Sequence record: OR844650.1
DNA: 64,000 nt
Direction: 5' to 3' (one strand)
In this document: piece by piece, positions 2 through 37,499 of the stretch
Position numbering within the stretch: the stretch's first letter is position 1
How the letters are laid out: every line of letters starts with the position of its first letter
Translations under genes and position numbers: made by a program
Notes under the pieces: model-generated
Databases searched by the model: none
What the model was told of the DNA's origin: nothing
What the model saw: only the letters and a program-made list of their open reading frames with translations

Positions 2-283
2 TTGTTCTTCGGGCTTAACTTCAAAACTCTCATCATCCCATACTTCATCCGTACCATGTTCAGTACTATGAAGTTGATGTTCAGGGATATAATCAGGAAT
101 TTGCATTTCTCGTTCTTTTTCTTGAATCAACTCTTCACGAGTTTTAATAATTGTTCCACCGGAACCGATTTTATCACCACGTGCGTTTAGATTAGCATTA
201 CCCAATGCTACCTGATGTTGATTTTGGTACTTGAGCATATCCATGTCAATTGTTGTACCACGATAAGTTGTATGTTTAGACAT
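2..283 (-). CDS. Conserved hypothetical phage protein, partial (runs off left edge; not in ORF track)
   Basis: Manual translation from ATG at 283: MSKHTTYRGTTIDMDMLKYQNQHQVALGNANLNARGDKIGSGGTIIKTREE..., open to the window edge; AAAGGA RBS upstream. Confidence 0.75.
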   Translation of the reverse strand, partial: MSKHTTYRGTTIDMDMLKYQNQHQVALGNANLNARGDKIGSGGTIIKTREELIQEKEREMQIPDYIPEHQLHSTEHGTDEVWDDESFEVKPEEQ

Positions 284-346: not shown

Positions 347-865
347 CTACCATTTCAAAAATTCGTTAACATCAAGTTCGTACTTCAATGAATCTACCAT
401 ATGTAGTCCAATCAAAAACAAACAGTATGATGCAACAGAGCTTCCACGACCTAGACCCCAAAAGATCTCATTTTCTTCCATATAATCAACAAGCCATATC
501 ATACATCTTAGTAGCTTTGTCATATTATAATATTCATATAAATCAAGTTCATACTCAACACGTTTTCGTGCTTCATCGGATGTGCATTTTTGTAAGAAAA
601 AGTCACGCAGATTTATATTGTCGTATACTGGATCATATCGCCACAGTTCATGATTTTTATCATGCTCAATTGTATAATCCAGCATACGTTGTTCTAAGCC
701 AAATTTTTTACAGTTATCATTGAATTTCAACCTTTCAGGTTCATCAATTTCCTGCAATTGTAAGTACTGGATATCTGCACCGCAATTGATTGCATAAACA
801 ACTGCGTTAAGATTACATTTCACATCACCATTGGGACTTATAAATCTGTTTCCTTGTACTTTCAT
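347..865 (-). CDS. DnaE/Pol III alpha-like N-terminal piece of polymerase core (split gene, part 1)
   Basis: RVEYELDLY...WGLGRGSSVASYCLFLIGLHMVDSLKYELDVNEFLK matches DnaE RLExEL...VGPGRGSGAGSLVAYALxITxLDPLxxDLLFERFL; ends immediately before the catalytic DxD motif. Confidence 0.85.
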   Translation of the reverse strand: MKVQGNRFISPNGDVKCNLNAVVYAINCGADIQYLQLQEIDEPERLKFNDNCKKFGLEQRMLDYTIEHDKNHELWRYDPVYDNINLRDFFLQKCTSDEARKRVEYELDLYEYYNMTKLLRCMIWLVDYMEENEIFWGLGRGSSVASYCLFLIGLHMVDSLKYELDVNEFLKW

Positions 866-1137: not shown

Positions 1138-3531
1138 TTAACCTCCTATGTTATTGTTTTGCAATGTAATCAAAAATGTATCTGAAACATAATTCACTGA
1201 TTCATGCGAAAAGTATCCGAATTCAACCGATGTGATTTCGAACTCTACACCTACCATTGTACCATGTTCATTGTTCTGAAGTAAAGTGTTGAAAAATGCT
1301 TCACCTTTCCCTGGTTGACAATATGCAACTGGAATGATAGGCATGAATTTTTTCTGTATACCATCTTCAATGTATGGGTGATTCATAAATCTTGGAACCG
1401 TATCAAGCATTTCATCACTGATACTTGGTATCGCATCAACGTATAGACCACGATTTTGTAAATCGGTTGGGTCTTTTACTAAGTTGGTTGTGTCTTCACC
1501 AATAGCCTGAAAAATATTTTGTCGTAAACCAAATAATTCACCAAGCTGACCGTTGTCGATTTGAGTATATTGACGTGGATTTTTGGATACAGATACTAAA
1601 GATCCTTCAGGTAAAACCTCTCTATATAATAGATCATATTGTAAGTTACCTTGATTGTCAAGTGCTGATATTATTTTATAATTACCCATTACCATTTTAA
1701 ATTTTCCATTTGGAATAGTAGTTCCATTTGGGTTAATTATACTATTTCTCAATACTTTCTTGATATCAGAAAGGTTAGTATATGGATACGTTTGACTTAG
1801 GAAGTTTTCTTTCAATAACATCTTCGGTATTTTCTGAAGACCATATCTATTGTCAGATTGTCGGAAAAATAGTTGATTAGTGAATGATGAAGTACTGATA
1901 CATTTAAACCATTCTCTCTCAAATGCAACCGAAGGTAATACATGTGCACTCAAATAATTCTGTCCGAATCCTCTTACAATCTTAAGGTTAAATATTTTTC
2001 TTGCTTCACCACCTTCAGTACTAAATGCTTTAACATAAAACGATAATTTAATATCATCATTTTCACTAAAATCAATACTTTTGGCATATGCAGTTCCTAC
2101 AAGATATCCATCTGGTGTCAAATCTATCCCATACTTTCTAATGTCATCACCACCATCTAAAACATACGAAACTTGATTAGAGCTATCAGTTTCAATTTTA
2201 GGATATATACTGTCTCCAAAATATTCACCAACATGTATGGTTCCTAAATCACTATCAGTAATAAAGTTTATATTATTACCTTCTTCTGCGTTTATCAAAA
2301 CCCTGAACATTTTTTGCATACCAATGATATTATCACCAAGAGTAGAGTCATAATATCCTAAATCAATCCAATCACTACTATCATAAACGGGCTTAATTGT
2401 TCCATTATCGTATTCACCACTAATTACGTATGGATACACAACATTATCTTTTAATTGATATAAATGATTGGGTAGTGGTTTTTCTGAAATAGAATATATA
2501 GTATCTATGTCTTCAGGACAAACCCACATTTGATATGCTTTATATCGTTGATTGATAGCAAACCTTTCACTTTCTTCGGTGTATGTACTTAATATATCAA
2601 CAATCTCAACTTTAAAATATGCATCACAAGCATCTGAGTCATATAAAAATGTTTGCAATAATTGCCCATTTGGGTTGAACACCATTCCAGTGTCAATTAA
2701 ATTACCATTTCTATTTTGAATATTAACTTTTACTTCTTTGTTTATACCAGAAATAGGCCATGTTGATTGTGCTGGCTTGAATACTGCGAAATCATTCGTA
2801 ATATGTTTATCTGGAACTTCAGAAATATCCATGTCAATCAAACGATATGCTGGAAAAAAGACACGAGGTGTAATATCAGTAGTCATGTCAGTACCCAAAA
2901 TGAAAGGTCGTCTTCTTCCAAATCCTTGAACGAACAATGTACTGTTGGAGCCATACTCAACATCACCAATACAATAAAGCTTTTTGTCATCACCAATCTC
3001 AACTCCGGGTGTAACCCAAACTTCTTGACTATCATATGTTATTGATGTATCAGTTAATCCTAGAACACCACTTGGTGAAATATTTCCAAAATACATAACA
3101 TTTACTGCTTGTAAATAAAAATTTATAATTTCTGTATTATTATAGGTTCCATCATTTTTACAATGAATTTTTATAAAATAAACATCTTCACTATTAGTAC
3201 TTGCAGATAAGTTAAATTCATTTTTGCTGATTTTACACTTATGCTTACCATTTACTAATTTATTACCAGTTGTACCATCTGAAATAGGAACAAAAGTATT
3301 TTCGTCATTACCAACATAAAAAGTATAATGTGGTTCTGGATCAAATACAGCACCTGAACTATCCAAGCATTGTATGTTAAGAATCATTTCTAAGTATTCA
3401 TCTTCATTTAATACATAGCTATCATCCGTTGTGCTTTCTTTATTGATACTCAAACGCACAAGAATGTCTTGTCCTTCTTGTATATATCGAGCATCGGCTT
3501 TTATATCCCATCGTGGGGTAAAAGTTGTCAT
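1138..3531 (-). CDS. Large virion structural protein (baseplate-associated-like, Ig/cadherin-like segment)
   Basis: About 800 aa, beta-rich, with a DLGTIHVGE...YVLDGG...LTPDGYLVG Ig-like segment; likely start MTTFTP at 3531 (GGAGA RBS); TAAATA upstream. Confidence 0.55.
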   Translation of the reverse strand: MTTFTPRWDIKADARYIQEGQDILVRLSINKESTTDDSYVLNEDEYLEMILNIQCLDSSGAVFDPEPHYTFYVGNDENTFVPISDGTTGNKLVNGKHKCKISKNEFNLSASTNSEDVYFIKIHCKNDGTYNNTEIINFYLQAVNVMYFGNISPSGVLGLTDTSITYDSQEVWVTPGVEIGDDKKLYCIGDVEYGSNSTLFVQGFGRRRPFILGTDMTTDITPRVFFPAYRLIDMDISEVPDKHITNDFAVFKPAQSTWPISGINKEVKVNIQNRNGNLIDTGMVFNPNGQLLQTFLYDSDACDAYFKVEIVDILSTYTEESERFAINQRYKAYQMWVCPEDIDTIYSISEKPLPNHLYQLKDNVVYPYVISGEYDNGTIKPVYDSSDWIDLGYYDSTLGDNIIGMQKMFRVLINAEEGNNINFITDSDLGTIHVGEYFGDSIYPKIETDSSNQVSYVLDGGDDIRKYGIDLTPDGYLVGTAYAKSIDFSENDDIKLSFYVKAFSTEGGEARKIFNLKIVRGFGQNYLSAHVLPSVAFEREWFKCISTSSFTNQLFFRQSDNRYGLQKIPKMLLKENFLSQTYPYTNLSDIKKVLRNSIINPNGTTIPNGKFKMVMGNYKIISALDNQGNLQYDLLYREVLPEGSLVSVSKNPRQYTQIDNGQLGELFGLRQNIFQAIGEDTTNLVKDPTDLQNRGLYVDAIPSISDEMLDTVPRFMNHPYIEDGIQKKFMPIIPVAYCQPGKGEAFFNTLLQNNEHGTMVGVEFEITSVEFGYFSHESVNYVSDTFLITLQNNNIGG

Positions 3532-3587
3532 TATAATTCTCCATAGCCAAGCTGCCATTATCTATAGATTATTTATATAAAGGACAA

Positions 3588-3608
3588 GGAAGACCCATAA
3601 GGTCTTCC
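3588..3608 (-). terminator. Intrinsic terminator after topoisomerase medium subunit
   Basis: GGAAGACC-5nt-GGTCTTCC hairpin. Confidence 0.6.
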
Positions 3609-3618
3609 ATTAAATATA

Positions 3619-5031
3619 TCAATTGTCTGATTTAGGAGTAAAGTCAATCTTTCTTAGTTCTTTTAGTTCAGATTTATAAATGTCCCAAATTAAGTCATGA
3701 TTAGATAACAGTTCATTGTACTTATCCATCAAATCAAGATTATCTTGAATATCTTGTAGTACTGATTGATAATTATCTTGCGTCCAGCGATATGAAGGGA
3801 AGTTTACAATGCTTTGAATATTCTCTTCCGTTGCTTCAATTTCGGTATTTAACGATTTAACGAATTCAACCATTTCAGCACGGTTTGCAAATCCTTTTAC
3901 CTTAGCAATCATATCATTATCGAAACATTCTTTAATTAGAATTTTATAACGAACTTCAGCAGCACAATCATCAAGTTTCTTTTCATAACGCTTGATGTAA
4001 TATTTGAAACGGAAATCAACGAAGTCTTTAATCAAATCCATCGTAGTATCGTAAACTTTCACTTTGCCATTTTCACCTAGAACAGTTAAATGTTGAGTCA
4101 TTTTTTTGTTAATGCCAAAATACTCAATAACATCCATCTCTGTCCATTTAGCTGACGTTCCACGTGGAAGTTTAATGGTAATATCAATTACATCAGTACT
4201 ATCATTGTCATAATCACGAATCTCACCATCATCACTCATTTTGATTAGTTTTTCGATGAATTTCTCAATACTGTAATTAGGTGGTAAGCCTGTTACTTTA
4301 ACAGTGCTTGCATCAATAACCTCAGCTTTACCATAGAATTCATACTTATTTTCATCAAGCTTAGTCACAACATCACTTGCACCACATGAAACATAATATG
4401 GGGTCATTTCTTTTAGTGGTTTTTTATCAATAGCACGAATGCAATTATCAATAATATCTTCAATTTTATGTGGTAGAATTGTACTCTTATAACCAACTGA
4501 CATACTATCATTACCAAACAATGATAATGGAATAATAGGCAAGAAATGAACAGGTTCATATGTTGTCCCGTCATAGTTCTCTTTCATTGGTATAATATCA
4601 GCATCACGCAAAACAAGCATCTCAGTACTCTTATTCTTTTTAACATAAGTGTAACGAGCAGATGCTGGTGTACTGTTTACTTGTGTACCAAAACCACCAC
4701 GTTTTCCAATAAGAGGATAGTTGTTAGCTACTGGAGATGCTAGATTTTGAAGTGTTCCTGATGCTGACGTGTCTCCATGAAGATAGATACCATCACTAAT
4801 CATTTTTCCAGCACATGATACTGTTTTAATTTCCCCACTAATTTTAGATAATGTGAAGATTGCTTTACGTTGTGAACTCTTTAGACCATCAATTCCAGGA
4901 ATAGCACGGTCTAGTGTATACATCGAATATTCTAGTGATGTTGTATTCACATAATCAGAACTGTTATAATCTAGTAGAGTTAGTGTTTGGTTATCGATAT
5001 TATGATTTTCTGTTTTTTTACTTTTAGCCAT
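3619..5031 (-). CDS. Type IIA DNA topoisomerase, GyrA/gp52-like subunit
   Basis: DRAIPGIDGLKSSQRK, YLHGDTS and active-site ASARYT motifs. Confidence 0.95.
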   Translation of the reverse strand: MAKSKKTENHNIDNQTLTLLDYNSSDYVNTTSLEYSMYTLDRAIPGIDGLKSSQRKAIFTLSKISGEIKTVSCAGKMISDGIYLHGDTSASGTLQNLASPVANNYPLIGKRGGFGTQVNSTPASARYTYVKKNKSTEMLVLRDADIIPMKENYDGTTYEPVHFLPIIPLSLFGNDSMSVGYKSTILPHKIEDIIDNCIRAIDKKPLKEMTPYYVSCGASDVVTKLDENKYEFYGKAEVIDASTVKVTGLPPNYSIEKFIEKLIKMSDDGEIRDYDNDSTDVIDITIKLPRGTSAKWTEMDVIEYFGINKKMTQHLTVLGENGKVKVYDTTMDLIKDFVDFRFKYYIKRYEKKLDDCAAEVRYKILIKECFDNDMIAKVKGFANRAEMVEFVKSLNTEIEATEENIQSIVNFPSYRWTQDNYQSVLQDIQDNLDLMDKYNELLSNHDLIWDIYKSELKELRKIDFTPKSDN

Positions 5032-14873: not shown

Positions 14874-16276
<1,403 letters not shown>

Positions 16277-16279
16277 AAT

Positions 16280-16310
16280 AAAAGGAGCAACATTTTGTTG
16301 CTCCTTTTTT
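16280..16310. terminator. Bidirectional terminator between convergent genes
   Basis: AAAAGGAGCAAC-loop-GTTGCTCCTTTT. Confidence 0.85.
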
Positions 16311-16311
16311 A

Positions 16312-17912
<1,601 letters not shown>

Positions 17913-27168: not shown

Positions 27169-28689
27169 TCATTTCCTTTGATTTAACCATTGCTTCATTG
27201 CATGAACACGATCAGTACCAGCATGTGTCTGTGGATTCTGTATTTCGTTTTGTGTCGTAGAGTTAGGAGCACTATCAGTATTTAGTGTTACTGTATTGTC
27301 AGGTTGCACAGATGGTGATTTAGCTGCACCAGAAAGCGAATGACGTAATGTTTGCATAGTGCTGGGTGGTAACGCCATGTTCCCTCCACCAATCTTAGAA
27401 ACACCGCTGTGACGGAATCCATTACCTTCGGTTTCCATTTGTTGTACTGTAGTTGCGTGGTCAAGAACTCTCAATGAATCAATATCATATGACATACGCA
27501 AACGGGAACCTACTGCACTACTGTTACGTGTTTTTTGGAAATCAAACCATAGTTCGCCAGTTTCTTTTTTTGCTTCAATATAAATTACGTTATCAGCAGT
27601 ATAAATTTTTGAAATACCACCAGCAATCTGACTTTGACTTTTCTTATCTTCGTCCATACCACTACGGTTAAACTGAGATGCAGTGAAAACAGTCAAATCC
27701 ATTTTGGATGCAAGAGCACGTAATTCTTCTGATACAAATTTATCTTTAGTAAATGTATTGGATTTATCATTTGGTCCAAGACGATTAGAAGTTAATAGAT
27801 CCAAATAGTCCACGCATACATAATCAAGTTTGATTTCCATCTTAATTTGTAATTCACGTAGATAACTTTCAATATCGTCTGTGGTTGTTACAGATTCAGG
27901 TAAGCGTTTAATACGCAACATACCACTGTTTTTACCTTCAACTTTAACAGCAAATCCAATCTTTTCAGCTTCATTTTTTACATTACTGAGTTTTGATTCA
28001 GTCATCATACCATAGATACGAACAGCAACCAACTCTTCAGCTAGTTCAAGTGAAATGTATGCACCATTCATTCCAGCTTTCGCAAAGTTAACTGCTAAAT
28101 TTTGCAGTACTACTGATTTACCACCACCTGATGCAGCAGCAAAGATCTCTAACTCTCTACGCCCAAATCCACCGAAAAGTTTGTAATCAAGAGTTTCCCA
28201 ACCACTCTTAAATGATCCTTGCATTGTACTGAGTGAGCGGATTGTATCTTCAGGGTTTTCAAAAATATCCAAACCTAACTCATTCTGTACCGTTACCAAC
28301 ATTGCTTCTCGGATTAGTTCTTCGATTCCACCATATTTTTTCTGATGGACAAGTTCCATTCCTTTTTCAACGGCTAACGCTAATGCTTTATGACGACAAA
28401 ATTCACCACAGGTATCAAGTACTGATTGTTTATGTAATTCTTGAACTTCATATTGATCGTATTGATAACCACCTTTAACTTCAATATCTTTCAAAGTAGG
28501 TGATGAACTATATTTTGCAGCATAATCATGCACGTATTGAATACTTTCATGAAATGTTTTATCAAAATATTCTGGTTTAAGGATATTTTTACAACGTACA
28601 TATAAATCAGGATTACTGAAAATCTGAGATAATAAGTATTGTTGTGCATTAATCCCATATTGTTTCACATCCACTGTGCTTTGAATCAT
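27169..28689 (-). CDS. Replicative DnaB/gp41-like helicase
   Basis: AASGGGKS Walker A, ISLEL, VDYLDLL, FTASQFNRSG, FQKTRN. Confidence 0.92.
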   Translation of the reverse strand: MIQSTVDVKQYGINAQQYLLSQIFSNPDLYVRCKNILKPEYFDKTFHESIQYVHDYAAKYSSSPTLKDIEVKGGYQYDQYEVQELHKQSVLDTCGEFCRHKALALAVEKGMELVHQKKYGGIEELIREAMLVTVQNELGLDIFENPEDTIRSLSTMQGSFKSGWETLDYKLFGGFGRRELEIFAAASGGGKSVVLQNLAVNFAKAGMNGAYISLELAEELVAVRIYGMMTESKLSNVKNEAEKIGFAVKVEGKNSGMLRIKRLPESVTTTDDIESYLRELQIKMEIKLDYVCVDYLDLLTSNRLGPNDKSNTFTKDKFVSEELRALASKMDLTVFTASQFNRSGMDEDKKSQSQIAGGISKIYTADNVIYIEAKKETGELWFDFQKTRNSSAVGSRLRMSYDIDSLRVLDHATTVQQMETEGNGFRHSGVSKIGGGNMALPPSTMQTLRHSLSGAAKSPSVQPDNTVTLNTDSAPNSTTQNEIQNPQTHAGTDRVHAMKQWLNQRK

Positions 28690-28711: not shown

Positions 28712-29767
28712 TTACATCCATTTATCCGTTTGAGCTTTAATATAAAATGGCTCATCTACTATACTATCATGTATTAATTGTAAACAAAATAACCTACCAA
28801 ATCGTGCACAAGCTTCTTCAAAGTCCTTGATATGACGTATTGTACTACCTTCTCTTACAGCACCAAAGTCTGGGAAGGAAACACTGAATCCATTTTCAAG
28901 TGCTTGGTCTATAGTTATTAATCCATCTTTATCTCTATCTGGAACAATAACTATTTTTTTACCTTTTTGCTGTGCATCTTTTAATACATCAATCTGTACG
29001 TTTGATAATTTAAAGTTATTAGCAGATACACCACCCATTAATGCTGCGTCTAACGGACCCTCACATACTAAAATTGTTTTTATTCGTTCATCTTTTAATA
29101 AATCATAGTTATATAGTATATTAGTACTTACTTGATTTATGAACCTGTATGTACTTCCAGGATCTTTTAATTTATGTCGTGCAGTATAACCAATAATTTT
29201 ACCATTCATGAAATATGGAATAATAAATCTGTCATACATTTTATGTTCTTTATTAGGTGACCAATATAATTCTAAGTCTAACAGATATGGGTTTCTTTCA
29301 TTGACATTATGCAAAACACTTATAAATTCTTGTGGAATTTTATCTTCAGGTAAAGAAGCCCATTCCCAAAATGTTTTTGCATTTGATGGCAAATCACGTA
29401 CTGTTACTCGGTCATACAATTTTGATGCAACAGTTTCTTGTGCAGCAAAATCACCGCTGTCAACCATTTCTTTAATATAAAACTTAACTAATTCTATTTC
29501 TTTATCTTGTGCACCAAAAGAAATGAGCAAAGACTCCATATCTTTGCTCATATATTTTCCTGGTTGCCAACCAGTTTTTAAACTACAGTTAAAGCAGTTA
29601 TATGAAACGGAACCATCTGCATTGAACATATGATTACCACGGTGCTTTGTATCCGGCCTTGAATGTCCTCTGAACACACAAGCTGGACAGTTGTGTCGTG
29701 ACCATGTACCAATCGCAGGTACTGGATCATTCATAATTTGTGCCATTATGTTTTGTACAGCGTTCAT
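28712..29767 (-). CDS. DNA primase (gp61/DnaG-like)
   Basis: Zn-binding NCPAC...YNCFNC, FIIPY...GYTAR, TOPRIM VCEGPLDA and VPDRDKDG. Confidence 0.9.
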   Translation of the reverse strand: MNAVQNIMAQIMNDPVPAIGTWSRHNCPACVFRGHSRPDTKHRGNHMFNADGSVSYNCFNCSLKTGWQPGKYMSKDMESLLISFGAQDKEIELVKFYIKEMVDSGDFAAQETVASKLYDRVTVRDLPSNAKTFWEWASLPEDKIPQEFISVLHNVNERNPYLLDLELYWSPNKEHKMYDRFIIPYFMNGKIIGYTARHKLKDPGSTYRFINQVSTNILYNYDLLKDERIKTILVCEGPLDAALMGGVSANNFKLSNVQIDVLKDAQQKGKKIVIVPDRDKDGLITIDQALENGFSVSFPDFGAVREGSTIRHIKDFEEACARFGRLFCLQLIHDSIVDEPFYIKAQTDKWM

Positions 29768-29825: not shown

Positions 29826-30800
29826 TCTACGTATCAAAATTTTAGGTACTGTTAGGAAAGGGTCATACACTTTTCGGACAGCAGCATAGTCATATGGTAC
29901 TGGAACAATTTTGGGATGAATAGCAACCACCAAACGTAACCACATATAATTTCCTTTAAAATTAAATGCTTGTATTCCGTCAAGTTCTTTTGGAAAACCT
30001 TCTGAATCAATTCCATTTTCAATATAATCCTTTCCATCTAATTTAATAATAAACCATTTATAGTTTTCATTATCATTAGGTACGTTGTTACACAAGCACC
30101 CTTGTAGCTGTATTCTACCAATAAATTTATCAAAATAGATTGCAATACTACTTAATCCATCTACTAATCCAAACTGCATTTGTGCTGGTAGTGGAGTTGA
30201 TGCGAGAATATCATATTCACCAATCATACCATTTCCAATTGGTTCATGATATAAACGCTTTATAGTTGTCCATGCTGGATTTTTATTAACTGATATTTCA
30301 GTACTGGGGACAAATACAGGTGCTGCTTGGTCTGAAATTATTAGCTCTGCTGATGCCTCAAAGTTCATCCCTGTGTATAGATATTGTGTTGGTTCTATAA
30401 GTGAACCATCCATTGTTACTTTAGTAATGCTCCATCTATATTTTGAACCAGGACTGGTATCTTGAATAACTCCTGCTGGAACAATACATCCATAATATAC
30501 TTTCTTTTTATTTCCTAATGTTTGTCTTGCTTGTCCACTTTCTGATAACCAACTGGGTTCTTGTTTTTCTAATACAACATCAAATAGTTTAGTATTATTT
30601 CGTGCATCAAAAATCATAAATGTAAGATATTCATTATCTTTCAATAAAGTATATTTTCCATCAGCGTTGTGAACAGTAAAAGATAAATTATTATTTGCCC
30701 CTCTATATATAGTTAGTTTTTCATTGCTATATGGCATATTAAAATTGCCCAATGATACTTCCTGATTATAAGGGTACATAAACACGCCGTGATGAGCCAT
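29823..30800 (-). CDS. Putative virion structural protein (likely start MAHHG at 30800)
   Basis: Beta-rich, IYRGANNNLSFTVHNADG; GGAAGG RBS; TAAATA at 30842-30847. Confidence 0.55.
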   Translation of the reverse strand: MAHHGVFMYPYNQEVSLGNFNMPYSNEKLTIYRGANNNLSFTVHNADGKYTLLKDNEYLTFMIFDARNNTKLFDVVLEKQEPSWLSESGQARQTLGNKKKVYYGCIVPAGVIQDTSPGSKYRWSITKVTMDGSLIEPTQYLYTGMNFEASAELIISDQAAPVFVPSTEISVNKNPAWTTIKRLYHEPIGNGMIGEYDILASTPLPAQMQFGLVDGLSSIAIYFDKFIGRIQLQGCLCNNVPNDNENYKWFIIKLDGKDYIENGIDSEGFPKELDGIQAFNFKGNYMWLRLVVAIHPKIVPVPYDYAAVRKVYDPFLTVPKILIRR

Positions 30801-30857
30801 AGTTTTTCCTTCCATAAATAATAGGTATAAATTTATACTAATATTTATGGAACTAAT

Positions 30858-31211
30858 ATGAATCAATATAACACTATTCCACCATTCATTACTGTAATCC
30901 AGTATGATGGTAAAACGTTTGTTGGTATCATCAAAATCAAAAGCAAACAGTATACAACTCTTTACTGTTTCGATGATATGGATGATTCAATGCAAGACGA
31001 ATTGTTAGGTATAGCACACGATTGGTGGTGGCAAAGTAATAGAACCATTCCAGTTTGTCTATTCTTTCAAGAAGAGATGGAGAAATTTGAACCGTACACA
31101 CAGAGATTCGATACACCGTCGGTGAATTTCGTATGTGGTCCAGTAGTTTCTTTAAGCAATTTGCCACAGAAACGCATCAAGCGTCGTAATGTGGCTCTTA
31201 AGAAGAAGTAA
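30858..31211 (+). CDS. Conserved hypothetical protein
   Basis: 117-aa ORF with phage-like composition; TAAATA at 30815-30820 upstream; converges on the DnaE-like gene. Confidence 0.65.
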   Translation: MNQYNTIPPFITVIQYDGKTFVGIIKIKSKQYTTLYCFDDMDDSMQDELLGIAHDWWWQSNRTIPVCLFFQEEMEKFEPYTQRFDTPSVNFVCGPVVSLSNLPQKRIKRRNVALKKK

Positions 31212-31836
31212 GATGTTCAACTAAAGCATTTAGTTGTACAACAATCATTAAGCTATATGCGTAAGCATGTGGCTTTTTGAAATATCGTAATTTATTTCCT
31301 GCTTGGTCAGTGCCGATAGTACTATAATCCCATATGGTAGCTTTAACTTCGTCCCATGTGTTCATACTTTGGCACTGCCTTTTTCCTGGGCGAATCATTG
31401 CAATAAACATTGCTAGTTCGTCTATAGATTTAGGCTTCCATACATTTAATAAAGTTACATGTTTTTTAATTTGCGATAGATGTTCTACAATTTCGGGTTC
31501 TAACAATAGATCCCAATTTGGTTCCTGATTCATTAGTTCTTTTAAATGCTCTCTATCACGAACATACATGTAAGCTGACTGTGAAAGAATATCAACTTTT
31601 TGATACCCTAACCTTTCAGCTTCTTTATATTGTATACTTGCCAATCCAGTGATTGGGTCAATAGGTATATTATCAAAATGAACACCACTATTATGGGGGA
31701 TTAAACCATCCTCCGTAATTTTTTCAGTACTTCGCACACATGGAAGTTTAGCGATTACGCTTTTACTATCCTTGAAGTCAATGTCAATATCAGTTCGGGC
31801 TTTTCTATAATGTTTAGAATCGGTCGAATCCTGCAT
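31198..31836 (-). CDS. DnaE/Pol III alpha-like catalytic piece (split gene, part 2)
   Basis: RTDIDIDF (DxD), PHNSGV, LGYQKVDILS (third Asp), KPKSIDELAMFIAMIRPG, YFKKPHAYAY. Confidence 0.88.
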   Translation of the reverse strand: MQDSTDSKHYRKARTDIDIDFKDSKSVIAKLPCVRSTEKITEDGLIPHNSGVHFDNIPIDPITGLASIQYKEAERLGYQKVDILSQSAYMYVRDREHLKELMNQEPNWDLLLEPEIVEHLSQIKKHVTLLNVWKPKSIDELAMFIAMIRPGKRQCQSMNTWDEVKATIWDYSTIGTDQAGNKLRYFKKPHAYAYSLMIVVQLNALVEHLTSS

Positions 31837-32143
31837 TTTTTATTTGCTCCTGTAACTGTTTAACTGTATTAGTCAAAGTTGATATTTGATTCTCTAATAA
31901 TCTACAATTTTGTTTCGTCTTTGCCAATTCTTGACTTAAACTGAAAAAGCGTTCTTCGTGTCTTTCTACCAAAGAAATAATTTTTTCAATACGAGCAGGA
32001 TCATGAACTTGAAATGTTTTACCATCTAAAGTTATTTCAGTAATAGATCCTTGTCTAAGTAGAGATATTTGTTTTGATTTTTGTTCTTTAGGTACAGGTA
32101 CATACCCTTCTGGTATTTTATTATATATACTTTTTCCATTCAT
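31814..32143 (-). CDS. Coiled-coil hypothetical protein
   Basis: C-terminal heptad pattern; overlaps both neighbours. Confidence 0.7.
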   Translation of the reverse strand: MNGKSIYNKIPEGYVPVPKEQKSKQISLLRQGSITEITLDGKTFQVHDPARIEKIISLVERHEERFFSLSQELAKTKQNCRLLENQISTLTNTVKQLQEQIKNAGFDRF

Positions 32144-32850
32144 AATCCTGCCTCACATAGCATAATCTTAATTTCATCACAATCCTTTTTGTATTTTATA
32201 GTTTTGATTTCAAAATAACTTGGATCGATGTATTTAAGTATATATTCAATTTCTGAGTTTGATAGTTTTTTAAAAAACTTATTAGTACTTTTTTTAGGAG
32301 CAAGCCAGATAATCCAAGGTGAAATTTTACCACTCTCAATCCATGCAATTGCACGGGCAGAACTTACATTTTCAAAGAAAGTATTCCATTGTACATTCAA
32401 ATTTTCAGCCCATTCAACCAGTGAGATAACACTTCTTGCAATTGCTTCTTTTGGGTGCTCGGCACGAATTGTTTTTAATATCCATTCATCTTTTGCTTTA
32501 TATGTACTCCATTCCGTGATTGGTTTGTTATTGATAATCAAGTACTTTACAAACTCGTCCACATTAATAATATCTCTATTATTCAAATAGTATTCGGCAA
32601 AACTATAAAAATCATTAAAGTACTTTGACTTTATAAAAGCAATAAAAGGCTCTACGCCTTTTTTAAATGGGAACTTATTCAATTCCATAAATTGCATATA
32701 TATACGAAAAGCCTCCATCATCTGGCGGCTTTGGCGGTCTTCGTATCGGTCACGTTTTATACATTTATGTGTGTTTACAGTTTCTTCACGTTTAAATTCA
32801 CGATCACAAAATCTACAGGTATATACTTGATTACTTGATTTCTTTGCCAT
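32140..32850 (-). CDS. Zn-finger-containing hypothetical protein
   Basis: YTCRFCDREFKREETVNTHKC. Confidence 0.65.
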   Translation of the reverse strand: MAKKSSNQVYTCRFCDREFKREETVNTHKCIKRDRYEDRQSRQMMEAFRIYMQFMELNKFPFKKGVEPFIAFIKSKYFNDFYSFAEYYLNNRDIINVDEFVKYLIINNKPITEWSTYKAKDEWILKTIRAEHPKEAIARSVISLVEWAENLNVQWNTFFENVSSARAIAWIESGKISPWIIWLAPKKSTNKFFKKLSNSEIEYILKYIDPSYFEIKTIKYKKDCDEIKIMLCEAGL

Positions 32851-33676
32851 ATTTTTTACATTCTTCTTTAAACAATTTCATCATAGATTTCTTTTCATTA
32901 TCTTGAAAACCATTATTGTCAAGAAATGTCTCAAATGTTTTTTTATCATACTGCAATAGAACAATTTTGTACTCATCTTCATTCATTTGAGTAGATATAG
33001 TATCAGGTTGTGAGCTTTTAATTAACTCAAATAATTCGTTATTTGCCTTTTTGAAATTCTTAGAAAAGTTTAACCAGTTACGTGGCATTTCTTGTCCACC
33101 AATCATATCATGGACTGAACACATAAGCTGATATACTAATTCTGGATGTTCTTTCATATCCCAAAATCCATCATTAACCATATCATTTAGCATAATAAGT
33201 TGGTATTTGACAACTTCAGTATCTACTAATGAAACAATTTCGGAACCTGATACGCCAAATTCGACCATTGAGGATATTAATTTTTGTGCGTCATCTTTTG
33301 ATTGGACTGCAAATTTAATACGCCAATCATAATCACTATGACAGTACTTAGTTACTGATGAAACATTTGTCCCTGAAGACTTTAATTCAGTAACTAGTTC
33401 AGTCAGTGCTTCTTTACCACCAGATTTCCATTTTCCAAATACACTTTCAACTTTACTACTAGGGTAGGTTACTTGTAACGAATCATCTAAAGAGCTTACC
33501 CATCGCAAAACAGTATATGGAGTAAACTCTTTTCGTTCTTTTTCGGTCATGTCATTATAGTACTTATAATCAGCACGGTCAATGTGTTTTAGAAATTCAG
33601 CAATAGAAAAAGAATGCTGTGTTGGTTTTTCATCATCATCGACCGACTTATTTTTAATATCACTGAAATCAAACAC
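32831..33676 (-). CDS. Putative clamp-loader small subunit (gp62-like) with internal insertion
   Basis: FTPYTVLRWVSS ... LNDMVN...HPELVYQLMCSV...RNWL loosely follows the gp62 pattern; located in a replication operon. Confidence 0.4.
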   Translation of the reverse strand: MFDFSDIKNKSVDDDEKPTQHSFSIAEFLKHIDRADYKYYNDMTEKERKEFTPYTVLRWVSSLDDSLQVTYPSSKVESVFGKWKSGGKEALTELVTELKSSGTNVSSVTKYCHSDYDWRIKFAVQSKDDAQKLISSMVEFGVSGSEIVSLVDTEVVKYQLIMLNDMVNDGFWDMKEHPELVYQLMCSVHDMIGGQEMPRNWLNFSKNFKKANNELFELIKSSQPDTISTQMNEDEYKIVLLQYDKKTFETFLDNNGFQDNEKKSMMKLFKEECKKYGKEIK

Positions 33677-33680
33677 TATT

Positions 33681-34178
33681 TTATACTCCTAGATACAAAT
33701 CTTGAATTTTTTCGTTTTCATCTGCAAAGTACACACATGGTGGATTTTCACCACTATGTAGTGGGACGCATAGTAAATTCTTTTTAGGTAACATTGGTAT
33801 CTGCCACTTTGTAGTTAATGCAAATACACGTAGTACTTTGACTGGTTCAAACTTAGGATACATTGAACGGATAGGATTGTAAACAAAAGCTTTTGGTTCT
33901 TTCATGTTAAGAATGTTTTCAATTGTACACATCTCAACCATACCAGTTTCTTCATCACCTAACATAATTTGCCATCCTAGAGGCACTTGAATAATCTTTT
34001 CACCAATTTGAAGATCAGCACTAATACTATTAAATGATACGGTGTTTAGAATATGTCTAAAATAAAAATCAGATTCACCATTTGGGCTTAGATCCAAAAC
34101 ACAATACATTTCTTCAGGGATATGTTCTGTTACTAAATCCATGTCAAAAGAATTATTTTCAGGTGTTAATACGTTCAT
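33681..34178 (-). CDS. Conserved hypothetical protein
   Basis: 165-aa ORF with GGAGA RBS. Confidence 0.7.
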   Translation of the reverse strand: MNVLTPENNSFDMDLVTEHIPEEMYCVLDLSPNGESDFYFRHILNTVSFNSISADLQIGEKIIQVPLGWQIMLGDEETGMVEMCTIENILNMKEPKAFVYNPIRSMYPKFEPVKVLRVFALTTKWQIPMLPKKNLLCVPLHSGENPPCVYFADENEKIQDLYLGV

Positions 34179-34187
34179 GTCATCTCC

Positions 34188-34616
34188 TTAGTACTGCGAA
34201 TCTTCTTCGTCATCATAATATTCTTCATCATCTTGGTCTTCTACGCCATAAAATTCAAGTCCATAAGTTTCACACATCTCTTGAATTTTATCTACATCAG
34301 TATCCAGATATGAATCAAAATTACCACTTAGACTTACTACATCAATAAAAGTTTTCGTGTCAGTACTTGCATAGATGATATCATATTTCAATGATTCTAC
34401 TTTAGAATCAATTCGTGTCTGTAATTCATAGATATTAATCCAAGAATCACTATCAATATTACATCTCCATACGTTAGTATCATCCGTTTCTAGCTCAGGT
34501 ATATAGTCAAGAGAAGATACCATGTCATCCATAATACCATCATCGTTCAACAATACATCCATAACTTCTAAAGTTTCTTGGTCACAAATAAAAGCAATAC
34601 TAGATCTCAATTCCAT
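34188..34616 (-). CDS. Highly acidic hypothetical protein
   Basis: 142-aa Asp/Glu-rich ORF. Confidence 0.7.
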   Translation of the reverse strand: MELRSSIAFICDQETLEVMDVLLNDDGIMDDMVSSLDYIPELETDDTNVWRCNIDSDSWINIYELQTRIDSKVESLKYDIIYASTDTKTFIDVVSLSGNFDSYLDTDVDKIQEMCETYGLEFYGVEDQDDEEYYDDEEDSQY

Positions 34617-34650
34617 TTTATTTTACATCCTTGTTGTTGTCATATGACAC

Positions 34651-34679
34651 ATTATATCACAAACAGCGGGTTTATCCCG
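34651..34679 (-). promoter_or_regulatory. Putative middle-type promoter (overlaps a hairpin)
   Basis: CGGGAT(AA)-17nt-TATAAT with TGTGA extension. Confidence 0.5.
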
Positions 34680-36156
34680 CTGTGTTTTCCCAATCTTTAA
34701 CATCTATTATACTATGAGGATATTGTGCTTCCTTATAGTAAGCTAAACGTTCTCGTAAATGCTTGGCACTATACTTATTAGAACCACTAATATCATATAT
34801 TTCTACGTGGTCTTTATCTTCTGCTCGGCGTAATCCACGTCCAATTGACTGTATAGTTCTTACAAAACTTTTTCCTGGCTCAATCAATACTACATTATAT
34901 AACCTTGAAATACTAATACCAGTACTGGCAACGCCGTATGTCGCAATAAGTATTTTATTATCAGCCCAACGAATTTCACCATAAGATGATTCTCGATCTT
35001 TCTTTTTAGTTTCTCCACGAACGAATTCTGATTTGGGAATGCCTAAAAATTCACATAGCAACTCACCTGCTTCAAGTCTATCTACTAAAACTAAAGTGTT
35101 TCCTGATTCAGATAACGCAGATATCAATGACGCTACATATGCCATCCTATCTCTGTCAGTTACTAAGTATTTCAACTCTTCAGCATATGATGCAAACTTC
35201 ATACTACTTTTTAGTTTGATACAATTCACATTACATGTACTTAGTATTTGTTTATCTTGTAATTCCTTTGCAGTTATTTTAAATATAACATCACCAACAT
35301 TACATTTGATTTTCGCGGCAACTACCGGATCTTTAGGAATTGTTCCAGTAAGACCCCAACGTAATGGTACGTTATTCATAACTTTAGAAAGTACTTGAAC
35401 TAATGCGTCACCGCCTGCACCTTGACACTCATCAACGATAACACAAACTACTCCATCGATAAAATCATTCACGTCTTGTTCAGTTAATTCAATTTCACCT
35501 TTCTTGGTTTTCTTCCATAGAGAGTTAAATGATTGCCAAGTCGTAATAGTATGTTGGTGACCAAAATCTTTTTGTGAACCATAGAACATGCCAGTATCCA
35601 ACCCACACATAATGTAGTCATCATATGTTTGTTGTACTAAGTCAGTACTTGGTACTATTATAACAGAACGTCCATACTCTTGCACTTTCTTTGACAATGC
35701 AGCAGTAATGAGAGTTTTACCTGCACCAGTCGCTGCCAATAGCAGTCCGTGTGGATTAGCCAAACATGCATTAACCGCATTAACTTGATGTTCACGTAGT
35801 TTTATGGATTTACCTTCCATGTGGTGTCCTGCACCGAATACAACATCACTAAAAATATCTTCATCAATGGGGTCAAATTTAAATCCATAATCTACCCTAT
35901 GATCTACTAATTCAATGTCAATCTTAGCTTCATCAAGAATAGGCAATAACTTATCTAACATATGATAATAAGTTGTTCCGCCTAAATTCATAAACTGAAC
36001 TTTACCATCCCAACGTCCAATACGTCCTGCTGGTGTGAACTTTGCATATGGTAACACATATTCAGTTGCACGAATCATCTTTTGTCTAATTGAGGGATCA
36101 AGTCCCTCAAATTTACAATTCACCTCATCCAATAAGGTTAACTTACAAGTTTTCAT
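34672..36156 (-). CDS. uvsW: UvsW-like SF2 helicase
   Basis: LREHQ, AATGAGKT, VDECQ, GLTGT, ATYGVASTGISI, QSIGRGLR. Confidence 0.92.
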   Translation of the reverse strand: MKTCKLTLLDEVNCKFEGLDPSIRQKMIRATEYVLPYAKFTPAGRIGRWDGKVQFMNLGGTTYYHMLDKLLPILDEAKIDIELVDHRVDYGFKFDPIDEDIFSDVVFGAGHHMEGKSIKLREHQVNAVNACLANPHGLLLAATGAGKTLITAALSKKVQEYGRSVIIVPSTDLVQQTYDDYIMCGLDTGMFYGSQKDFGHQHTITTWQSFNSLWKKTKKGEIELTEQDVNDFIDGVVCVIVDECQGAGGDALVQVLSKVMNNVPLRWGLTGTIPKDPVVAAKIKCNVGDVIFKITAKELQDKQILSTCNVNCIKLKSSMKFASYAEELKYLVTDRDRMAYVASLISALSESGNTLVLVDRLEAGELLCEFLGIPKSEFVRGETKKKDRESSYGEIRWADNKILIATYGVASTGISISRLYNVVLIEPGKSFVRTIQSIGRGLRRAEDKDHVEIYDISGSNKYSAKHLRERLAYYKEAQYPHSIIDVKDWENTAG

Positions 36157-36171
36157 CCATGATTACCTTTA

Positions 36172-36990
36172 TTAATTAGTTCGAGTATTATATTCGTACT
36201 CAAATGTATATACTAAATCTTTATCACAGTTAGGGTTACTTGCATCTAAAATGTCACTATTAGTAATCATCCATTCAATGTAATTCAATGGAACTGTACT
36301 CATTGGCTCACCTTTGTGTTTACCAAATGGCATGAATTGATAACGCATTGGTGTGTTGCAGAAAGTTACAATTTGCTCACCAATATCACCATTAGGTTCG
36401 ATATGTCCACGTTCGATTGCAATTTCAACTAATTTGATTAGAACCTGATAACACATAAACACATCGTCTTTTGCTGCGTGTGCATTAACAGGTCGATGAA
36501 CATCACGATAACATCCAAACTTATACCACAAATAACTTAGAGTTAAGTTTTTAAATTCAATATCTTCTGCGAACATTTTCTTAGCAAGACGAAGGGTACA
36601 AATCCATTTATTTTCATCAAGTAAGTACTGTGAAATTGAGTTACGATATTTATATTCGTTATCTACCATCATTCTACGGTCAAATTGTACATTATGACCA
36701 ACAAAATACTTACGGCATCCCATAAGTGCATCAATGTTATCTAAATCATCTTTATACCCAACACAATTAGCTACATCCTCAGTACTGATAAAGTGCACAG
36801 CAGATGCCTCTGGTGGAATATCTTTCAAGGGTTTGTATCTCAATGTATAGTTATCAATAGTATCAATGTTTTCATGTGAAGTATGTGGATACGAGATACT
36901 AAATTCAATAATATCATCTTCACTCTCAACCCCAGTAGTTTCAGTATCTAGAACTGCTACATTTGATAAAAACTCATTTAATTTTGTCAT
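36172..36990 (-). CDS. DEDDh 3'-5' exonuclease (ExoX/epsilon-like) with C-terminal MPFGKHKG domain
   Basis: VLDTETTG, GHNVQFD, HAAKDD, MPFGKHKG. Confidence 0.85.
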   Translation of the reverse strand: MTKLNEFLSNVAVLDTETTGVESEDDIIEFSISYPHTSHENIDTIDNYTLRYKPLKDIPPEASAVHFISTEDVANCVGYKDDLDNIDALMGCRKYFVGHNVQFDRRMMVDNEYKYRNSISQYLLDENKWICTLRLAKKMFAEDIEFKNLTLSYLWYKFGCYRDVHRPVNAHAAKDDVFMCYQVLIKLVEIAIERGHIEPNGDIGEQIVTFCNTPMRYQFMPFGKHKGEPMSTVPLNYIEWMITNSDILDASNPNCDKDLVYTFEYEYNTRTN

Positions 36991-37005
36991 TTTATTCTCG
37001 CATAG

Positions 37006-37029
37006 AAAAAGGACGCGATATGCGTCCTT
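37006..37029 (-). terminator. Intrinsic terminator
   Basis: AAGGACGC-loop-GCGTCCTT with a T-run on the minus strand. Confidence 0.75.
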
Positions 37030-37037
37030 AATGATAA

Positions 37038-37499
37038 TTATTCTAAACGTGCATCCTCAATACCAGCGGCACGTAGTCTCACAATATTGTTTAACTGAAA
37101 AGCTTTCATCTCTAAGGATTTAACAATACTTGAATATGTATTTCTTATATAAGATACCTCGTTTATAAGTTCTGCTAACTCACAAACATCTTTATCACCT
37201 TCAACATACTTTTTACAGTCAGATGAAGATAGTGCACGGCGGTATCCTTCGAGAAAGTATTTGAACTTCTCGGCTTGTACCTGACGCATTTCAATTTCTA
37301 ACATTTCCAATACTGCTTCAAGTTCTTGAAGCTGGCTTAGACGCGTCTCATGCCAGCCAGGAATCTCTTGAGCAATTTTTTCAATGATGCCAATCTTCTT
37401 TACTTCACGACGAGCTTCTTCAACTTCGTTGTTAAAGAACTCAATCATTTCAATAATTTTAGATTTATCATCTTTGATAATCCAATGCCAAGGTTTCAT
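37038..37499 (-). CDS. uvsY: UvsY-like recombination mediator
   Basis: Helical protein with FLEGYRRALSSSDCKKYVEGD and KAFQLNNIVRLRAAG; directly downstream of uvsX. Confidence 0.75.
   Translation of the reverse strand: MKPWHWIIKDDKSKIIEMIEFFNNEVEEARREVKKIGIIEKIAQEIPGWHETRLSQLQELEAVLEMLEIEMRQVQAEKFKYFLEGYRRALSSSDCKKYVEGDKDVCELAELINEVSYIRNTYSSIVKSLEMKAFQLNNIVRLRAAGIEDARLE

Follow-up and report, generated by a model that had tools for sequence, protein, structure and literature searches.

Bacterial Pol III alpha, the DnaE subunit of DNA polymerase III, is represented in the PDB by the enzymes of E. coli (2HNH), Taq (2HPI/3E0D/4IQJ) and M. tuberculosis (5LEW), and is made as a single chain of 1160 residues with a PHP domain. 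In cyanobacteria the dnaE gene is split, at a place in the protein other than that of the phage break described below, and its products are joined by a natural split intein. A third arrangement, a 'minimal, split Pol III alpha' in group 2.2 jumbo phages, was described by Iyer et al. 2021 (Viruses 13:63, PMC7824862); the part of that paper devoted to it makes the Pol III alpha assignment by profile-profile analysis and proposes cooperation with the family B DNA polymerase (PolB) of these phages in strand synthesis or repair. Here we analyse such a gene pair in a stretch of 64,000 nucleotides from sequence record OR844650.1 (the window), which belongs to an Asteriusvirus (PBECO4/121Q-like, Rak2-like) jumbo coliphage with E. 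coli as its host and which, over the 3.7 kb compared, is 100% identical to Escherichia phage ECO103 4-12-1 and 99.8% identical to PBECO4. One gene encodes an N-terminal unit of 172 residues (N-half) and the other, 30.3 kb away, a C-terminal unit of 212 residues (C-half; Table 1). Judged from sequence and predicted structure, the pair is with high probability a phage split mini Pol III, and we are fairly confident that the two proteins make up a minimal split Pol III alpha-like polymerase, with one Mg2+/template-binding and one NTP-binding subunit, that would serve as a helper of the phage replisome.

The pair is the same thing as that of Iyer et al. 2021 (PHROGs 11127 and 11778), for which the passages concerned give an N-terminal NTP-binding and a C-terminal Mg2+/template-binding unit, encoded by distant genes in a genome with PolB. 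Elsewhere the CBB genome paper took the 172-residue piece for a truncated DnaE, later genome papers list only a 'DNA polymerase III', and RefSeq names both halves 'DNA polymerase' in PBECO4 (gp488 and gp449), as do the PHROG entries 11778 and 11127. The original prediction, made from the letters of this DNA without database searches, expected the halves to be labelled apart and perhaps to be uncharacterised, which held only in part since Iyer et al. in the passages cited, RefSeq and PHROGs all name both of them. The split pair is thus already known: its detection here was a correct rediscovery and not that of a new object, and the idea, published in 2021, is not something that the present analysis adds. 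What we add to the account in those passages is the neighbourhood of both genes, natural fusions and their placement in a tree, a wider distribution that extends to a 141-kb phage, and confirmation at the level of the fold. Bacterial Pol III alpha is the best and sole structural match of the halves; it shares with them the palm and proximal fingers motifs in the same order, but has them in its one long chain, whereas the phage pair has only ~315 homologous residues, divided over two chains and without PHP. The cyanobacterial system is like the phage pair in having two distant dnaE genes and unlike it in that the phage break lies inside the palm and is not accompanied by an intein.

The C-half begins with MQDSTDSKHYRKARTDIDIDF and holds the catalytic landmarks of DnaE in the order, and at the places, that had been predicted: D16-I-D18-I-D20, H48-N-S-G51, K80-V-D82-I-L, A146-M-I-R149-P-G151 and F186-K-K-P-H190-A-Y-A-Y194. 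The motifs used for reference in the E. coli protein (Eco) are DFDVDF (401-406), KHAGGV (510-515), KFDFLG (553-558), ALFRPGP (636-642) and FNKSHSAAY (756-764), so that D16, D18 and D20 are the equivalents of Eco D401, D403 and D405, and D82 that of D555. Across 117 homologues with 40-91% identity, D16, D18, D20, H48, G51, D82 and R149 are invariant, as are P150, K152, H190, Y194, Q201 and N203; conservation of the Asp residues had been named beforehand as a check on the proposal. The fingers motifs specific to DnaE (FQ, RPG, FxKxH and QxN) are likewise invariant in the aligned homologues. By its sequence the C-half is the putative carrier of the Mg2+-binding Asp strands (D16/D18/D20 and D82) and of a shortened fingers segment (RPG and FKKPH).

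Aligned to E. coli DnaE with hhalign, the C-half gave a single collinear alignment of residues 21-204 to Eco 485-774 (E 0.013), in which HNSG is paired with HAGG, KVDIL with KFDFL, AMIRPG with ALFRPG and FKKPHAYAY with FNKSHSAAY. A second alignment placed residues 8-20 on Eco 393-405 (E 0.04) and paired DIDID with DFDVD. Searched against the PDB with HMMER, the C-half profile found only M. tuberculosis DnaE1, in four collinear pieces and at E 0.49; its match to the Pfam fingers model stayed below threshold, and a single-sequence phmmer search of the PDB returned noise only. Neither half, nor any further piece of DnaE, was recovered when E. coli DnaE was compared with the window by tblastn. Plain sequence search thus does not connect the C-half firmly to DnaE, and the proposed link rests on the predicted fold, the fused proteins described below and hhalign, together with the published profile analysis. 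The AlphaFold2 (AF2) model of the C-half has a pLDDT of 93. In a Foldseek search of the PDB with this model the best 12 matches were all Pol III alpha, with probability up to 1.00, and were followed by noise, and 17 of the 18 best matches in BFVD were phage DnaE-type polymerases.

The DnaE segment that immediately precedes the C-half, from GRGS to FERFL, is encoded by the separate N-half gene, in agreement with the original prediction. The C-terminal part of the N-half reads ...GLGRGSSVASYCLF...DVNEFLKW. Pfam DNA_pol3_alpha (PF07733) matches its residues 92-171, ten NCBIfam DnaE models match it at model positions ~280-394, and the family profile aligns to Eco 320-392 with HMMER (E 4.6e-7) and to Eco 320-393 with hhalign (probability 87%); against the PDB the same profile had no match at E 0.01 or better. 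Invariant in the aligned homologues are R102, E106, G137, G139-R-G-S-S143, S146, H155 and F169, with the GRGS aligned to Eco 361-364. The N-half would on this evidence supply the palm helix and the GRGS triphosphate-binding loop, and its residues 1 to ~60 are an extra domain peculiar to the family. Since the N-half matches Eco 320-393, the break falls just before D401; the original prediction had placed it at a contiguous point of the bacterial enzyme. In the alignments and the model it lies between the palm helix after the GS loop and the strand that bears the DxD, inside the Pol-beta-like nucleotidyltransferase (NTase) core, so that neither chain would make an active site alone.

In rare cases the two halves occur in nature as one protein. 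P0308, P0390 and P0391, of 375-376 residues and 78-81% identical to one another, come from at least four contigs of different samples and contain a full N-half followed by a full C-half. The profile matches in P0308, residues 10-180 for the N-half and 190-370 for the C-half, leave a linker of 10 residues; in fused proteins of this type the spacing from the FL motif to the DxD differs from that of E. coli by no more than 3 residues, and PF07733 (DnaE palm) aligns unbroken over the P0308 junction and through the DxD strand. A fused form of 336 residues, P0373, is unrelated to the P0308 group; it too has both halves on a short linker with E. coli-like spacing, and it lacks ~90 residues at the N-terminus that are peculiar to the family. 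The tree built from the C-half domain places each fused form among standalone C-halves, in separate, well-supported clades (0.98 and 0.96). From this it seems that the family was split to begin with and that its halves were fused on at least two occasions. Natural fusions in two lineages are the strongest of the new arguments that the halves work together.

The P0308 lineage occupies the same locus as the standalone C-half, with a convergent open reading frame (ORF) and a structural gene downstream. P0373 is found on an 8-kb metagenomic contig (JGI 3300080032; L005), where its gene overlaps the end of a Rep/primase-like gene by 4 nt and is translationally coupled to it (the two together at 1516-4181, plus strand). 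The Rep/primase-like protein has 552 residues, a PF03090 domain and a helix-turn-helix (HTH) domain, and the contig also encodes a peptidoglycan-binding protein (PG_binding_1); the contig may stem from a small phage or a satellite that encodes a primase-polymerase pair of its own. ColE2-type Rep primases make a primer for a dedicated polymerase, which in ColE2 is the host Pol I. The resemblance on this contig is that a Rep-like gene of that type (PF03090) is coupled to a fused mini Pol III, and this coupling suggests a pairing of primase and polymerase. IMG/VR contained no close relatives of the fused forms, which were seen only in the large protein collection.

The family is large. The large protein collection holds 785 homologues of the C-half and 176 of the N-half, a C-half search of 1.84 billion representatives gave 510 matches, nearly all of those listed being either ~190-210 residues long or shorter fragments. 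With the large collection included, almost all of the C-half homologues listed have ~190-220 residues. At least 592 C-half loci and at least 564 N-half loci were found in IMG/VR. In the phage collection the C-half is present in 96 records and the N-half in 94, with an identical genus profile, which bears out the co-occurrence that had been set as a check on the proposal. The two genes are distant from each other, by 30 kb here, 44 kb in PA5oct and >100 kb in Atu_ph07, Phosso and SCTP-2, and in none of 160 viral loci (80 for the C-half and 80 for the N-half, with 10-kb flanks each, on which all neighbourhood counts below are based) was the partner half within 10 kb. Compared with relatives of ~80% identity, dN is 0.13-0.19 and synonymous sites are saturated. 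By these measures the family is old, widespread and under strong purifying selection.

The representative genomes of 185,579 species yielded only 11 loci, all on contigs of metagenome-assembled genomes (MAGs). When these were scanned together with one viral locus (L081), phage gene order was found in all 12; this gives no sign of a cellular version, and the family is effectively viral. Alishewanella phage vB_AspM_Slickus01 (L007, OQ508957.1 62370-74840), a non-jumbo phage of 141 kb, carries the C-half, and the system is therefore not confined to genomes >200 kb. In Slickus01 the C-half gene lies downstream of a gene annotated as RFC small subunit and upstream of a primase/helicase. L081 (IMG/VR contig 3300023108_001523) encodes at 15545-17215 (plus strand) an unsplit, PHP-less DnaE-like protein of 557 residues, which Pfam matches in the palm (3.7e-43) and the fingers (8.5e-15). 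A standalone C-half lies at a distance of 5 kb, and this contig therefore has a second DnaE-like gene near its C-half.

Over its two chains the pair retains the palm (Eco ~280-405), the HAGG and KxD strands and the proximal fingers to Eco ~774, ~315 DnaE-like residues in all. The elements of a Pol-beta-like palm, namely the GS loop, the DxD and the third catalytic Asp, are present when both chains are taken together, and the fingers are recognisable by their RPG and FNKSH motifs, with the proximal half only. No match to a PHP domain was found in Pfam or NCBIfam, and the N-half alignment begins at DnaE ~280. The thumb is nearly gone: 27 residues lie between the DxD and HNSG strands, compared with ~105 in E. 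coli, and the AF2 model shows as its remnant in the C-half a hairpin of ~25 residues (helix 24-30, strand 34-41). An internal fingers segment is missing from the C-half, which stops at the equivalent of Eco ~774; the distal fingers, the clamp-binding motif, OB and the tau-binding parts are absent. The absence of the clamp-binding and OB domains had been part of the prediction.

The phage also encodes, as had been noticed before, a PolB with its own exonuclease domain, which is presumed to be its main replicase. Some 360 residues of this protein, between the Pfam exonuclease match (80-280) and the polymerase match (645-865), are without assignment. Alongside PolB there are T4-like replisome genes for DnaB, primase, UvsW, UvsX, UvsY, single-stranded DNA-binding protein (SSB), topoisomerase II and a clamp loader. 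The C-half belongs to a block with the order UvsX, UvsY, UvsW, 165-residue protein, 281-residue protein, 236-residue protein, C-half, convergent 117-residue ORF, (structural protein), primase and DnaB; the order is kept down to ~40% identity and is identical in PA5oct. From 34616 to 31198 the genes are as tightly packed as the original prediction had it, some neighbours being 9 or 4 nt apart and others overlapping by 20, 4 and 23 nt. A promoter and terminator scan of 30400-37200 found 37 sites against 35.2 expected from shuffles, which is no excess, and the boundaries of the operon thus rest on gene spacing only.

The 3' end of the convergent 117-residue ORF overlaps the C-half stop by 14 nt. 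In its protein a WWW-x-SNR motif is invariant and the tail (KRxKR) is basic; the protein has no relative in the PDB or Pfam and is a possible accessory factor. The 236-residue protein carries a single N-terminal eukaryote-style C2H2 zinc finger (PDB profile E 3e-7, residues 6-29 only), and in this phage a clade-specific gene for 109 residues separates its gene from that of the C-half. The 281- and 165-residue proteins had no relatives in PDB profile searches, and none of the conserved neighbours is similar to a missing DnaE domain. The gp62-like protein that the original prediction placed in the operon was not recovered: the 142-, 165-, 281-, 236- and 109-residue proteins have no gp62 or clamp-loader match in Pfam, PHROGs, NCBIfam or PDB profiles, the C2H2 finger being the sole match in these searches, and the gp44-like ATPase gene adjoins the N-half and not this operon. 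As for the epsilon-like exonuclease that it saw nearby, Pfam and NCBIfam confirm the identity, but its standing as a neighbour does not extend outside the Rak2-like clade; with 6 of 80 loci it is ruled out as a general partner at the C-half locus, and it shares with the 142- and 109-residue genes a presence in the block only in that clade (6-7 of 80 loci). The exonuclease has a C-terminal QSregVF_b / ExoX-like_C segment (Pfam 1.6e-5).

The N-half gene is followed by genes for the 114-residue protein, a GroES-like protein (75 of 80 loci) and a gp44-like clamp loader (54 of 80), the last of which lies outside the window; in PBECO4 the genes after the N-half are at NC_027364.1 235903-239851 (locus L179). 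The GroES/Cpn10-like protein has 108 residues and is annotated 'head morphogenesis'. Beyond the clamp loader come an NT5C-like nucleotidase and then two 'virion structural' proteins of 187 and 226 residues, which are the size of T4 gp62 and gp45 and had no relative in PDB profile searches. Judged by these neighbours, each half belongs to a replisome gene cluster, and the two clusters are different.

Table 1. Positions in the window of the two polymerase halves and of the genes discussed with them; counts refer to the viral loci of the adjoining half.
Feature	Position	Strand	Evidence and conservation
N-half, N-terminal unit of split minimal Pol III alpha	347..865	-	PF07733 1.9e-9; phrog_11127 E 3e-87
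C-half, C-terminal unit of split minimal Pol III alpha	31198..31836	-	phrog_11778 full length, E 2e-108
114-residue protein, phrog_14844; N-terminal 94 codons, cut by window edge	2..283	-	after N-half in 78/80 loci
DnaB/gp41-like replicative helicase	27169..28689	-	Pfam DnaB_C 3.4e-17; 56/80 loci
gp61-like DNA primase subunit, downstream of C-half	28712..29767	-	RefSeq annotation; 67/80 loci
Convergent 117-residue ORF, phrog_11637	30858..31211	+	75/80 loci, this position and orientation
236-residue protein, phrog_11058; conserved gene upstream of C-half	32140..32850	-	76/80 loci
281-residue operon member, phrog_11758	32831..33676	-	conserved; outside Rak2-like clade only C-terminal ~155 residues kept
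165-residue operon member, phrog_11279	33681..34178	-	60/80 loci; no PDB relative
UvsW-like SF2 helicase	34672..36156	-	Pfam ResIII, DEAD, Helicase_C; 57/80 loci
Epsilon-like DEDDh 3'-5' exonuclease	36172..36990	-	Pfam RNase_T 6.7e-15; NCBIfam Pol III epsilon 3.7e-23
Family B (T4 gp43-like) DNA polymerase with own exonuclease domain, 1001 residues	49210..52215	-	Pfam DNA_pol_B_exo1 3.8e-23, DNA_pol_B 1.1e-21

The earlier proposal of a heterodimeric mini C-family nucleotidyltransferase is upheld by the co-occurrence of the halves, their invariant residues, the predicted DnaE fold and the natural fusions, and sequence and models together make it likely that the pair is an active, obligate heterodimeric polymerase. 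The two chains would join non-covalently, with the active site at their interface, to give one enzyme of ~315 DnaE-like residues. Once assembled it would polymerise on a DNA template, in dependence on Mg2+ and with low intrinsic processivity. It would act in the T4-like replisome beside PolB, where the ends that it extends could be those of RNA primers made by the adjacent primase or, in recombination-dependent replication, invading 3' ends, and the 3' end would then be passed to clamp-bound PolB. The genomic links to primase, DnaB, UvsX/Y/W, the clamp loader and the Rep/primase-like gene seem to point to work at the replication fork, and from these a primer-extension role may be suggested, tentatively.

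In two-polymerase replisomes, such as those with DnaE and PolC in Firmicutes or with Pol alpha and Pol delta/epsilon in eukaryotes, a small or distributive enzyme extends primers and then hands off to a processive replicase. The phage pair, with its C-half gene near a primase gene, is comparable to these by functional analogy and not by membership. By this analogy it could be, somewhat speculatively, a dedicated primer-extension polymerase that follows the gp61-like primase or acts on UvsX-made D-loops and hands over to PolB in a two-polymerase replisome of its own, with small neighbours (the C2H2 protein, the convergent 117-residue protein and the 114-residue protein beside the N-half) replacing the lost thumb and clamp-binding parts.

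Several points weigh against a polymerase of this kind. The loss of the thumb, the distal fingers and the clamp-binding motif casts doubt on efficient templated synthesis, and the N-half has a Glu (E168) at the position of E. coli R390. The sequence-only statistics that connect the C-half to DnaE are weak, with the HMMER and hhalign E values given above. PolB has exonuclease and polymerase domains of its own, and a second polymerase is not obviously needed. The conserved association with genes for primase, helicase and recombination is circumstantial evidence, and accords with repair or recombination-dependent replication no less than with primer extension. In the literature we found no biochemical, genetic or expression study of either half.

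In the main rival reading the pair would be an active polymerase whose task is to repair DNA, bypass lesions or extend D-loops during recombination-dependent replication, and not to extend primers at the fork. We regard this as possible but doubtful, and the sequence data do not separate it from primer extension. Without thumb or clamp the enzyme would work distributively, like many polymerases of repair, and the C-half block opens with UvsX, UvsY and UvsW. A part in repair is also among the proposals in the passages of Iyer et al. 2021 (PMC7824862) on the split enzyme. The closest conserved downstream neighbours of the C-half are, however, primase and DnaB, the N-half gene is linked to that of the clamp loader, and the fused P0373 is paired with a Rep/primase-like gene and not with repair genes.

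More distant from a polymerase of either kind is a Pol-beta-fold NTase without templated DNA synthesis, such as a terminal transferase or nucleotide-signal synthase, which we consider improbable. The Pol-beta-like fold serves many chemistries, and the missing thumb and distal fingers would suit an enzyme of that sort, but the invariance of the DnaE fingers motifs FQ, RPG, FxKxH and QxN argues against it, as do the best structural matches, which are to C-family polymerases only, and the location of both genes in replisome clusters. Halves without catalysis, which would bind components of the host or phage replisome as decoys or scaffolds, are very improbable. Their small size and the complete PolB already in the phage would be in accordance with such a function, but the catalytic residues are all invariant down to ~40% identity and the modules with which DnaE binds beta, tau and epsilon are absent; decoying of the host replisome, one of the jobs offered in the original prediction, is for this last reason unlikely. 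A reading of the halves as remnants of a broken dnaE in decay, or as independent of each other, is scarcely credible: it has a forerunner in the CBB genome paper, which took the N-half for a truncated protein, and is opposed by the age, spread and strong purifying selection of the family, the co-occurrence of the halves and their re-fusion in two lineages. Finally, post-translational joining by a split intein has its natural precedent in cyanobacterial dnaE and can practically be dismissed, since, in keeping with the original prediction, no Hint/intein domain was matched in the Pfam search of the window proteins, the flanks (2 residues beyond the FL motif in the N-half and 15 ahead of DIDID in the C-half) are too short for split-intein pieces, many C-half homologues begin directly at MDIDID, and P0308 bridges the junction with its 10-residue linker.

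If the pair is the active minimal split polymerase that we favour, it would be the smallest C-family DNA polymerase known, at ~315 residues, and the only one built from two polypeptides across the active site. The neighbourhood and fusion data name concrete partners and constructs with which such a split enzyme could be studied. It would help to show how small the catalytic core can be and where the bacterial replicase comes from, and could serve as a model of the ancestral enzyme. A further consequence would be that a large group of phages, abundant in the environment and with at least ~590 loci in IMG/VR, runs a bacterial-type and an archaeo-eukaryotic-type polymerase together.

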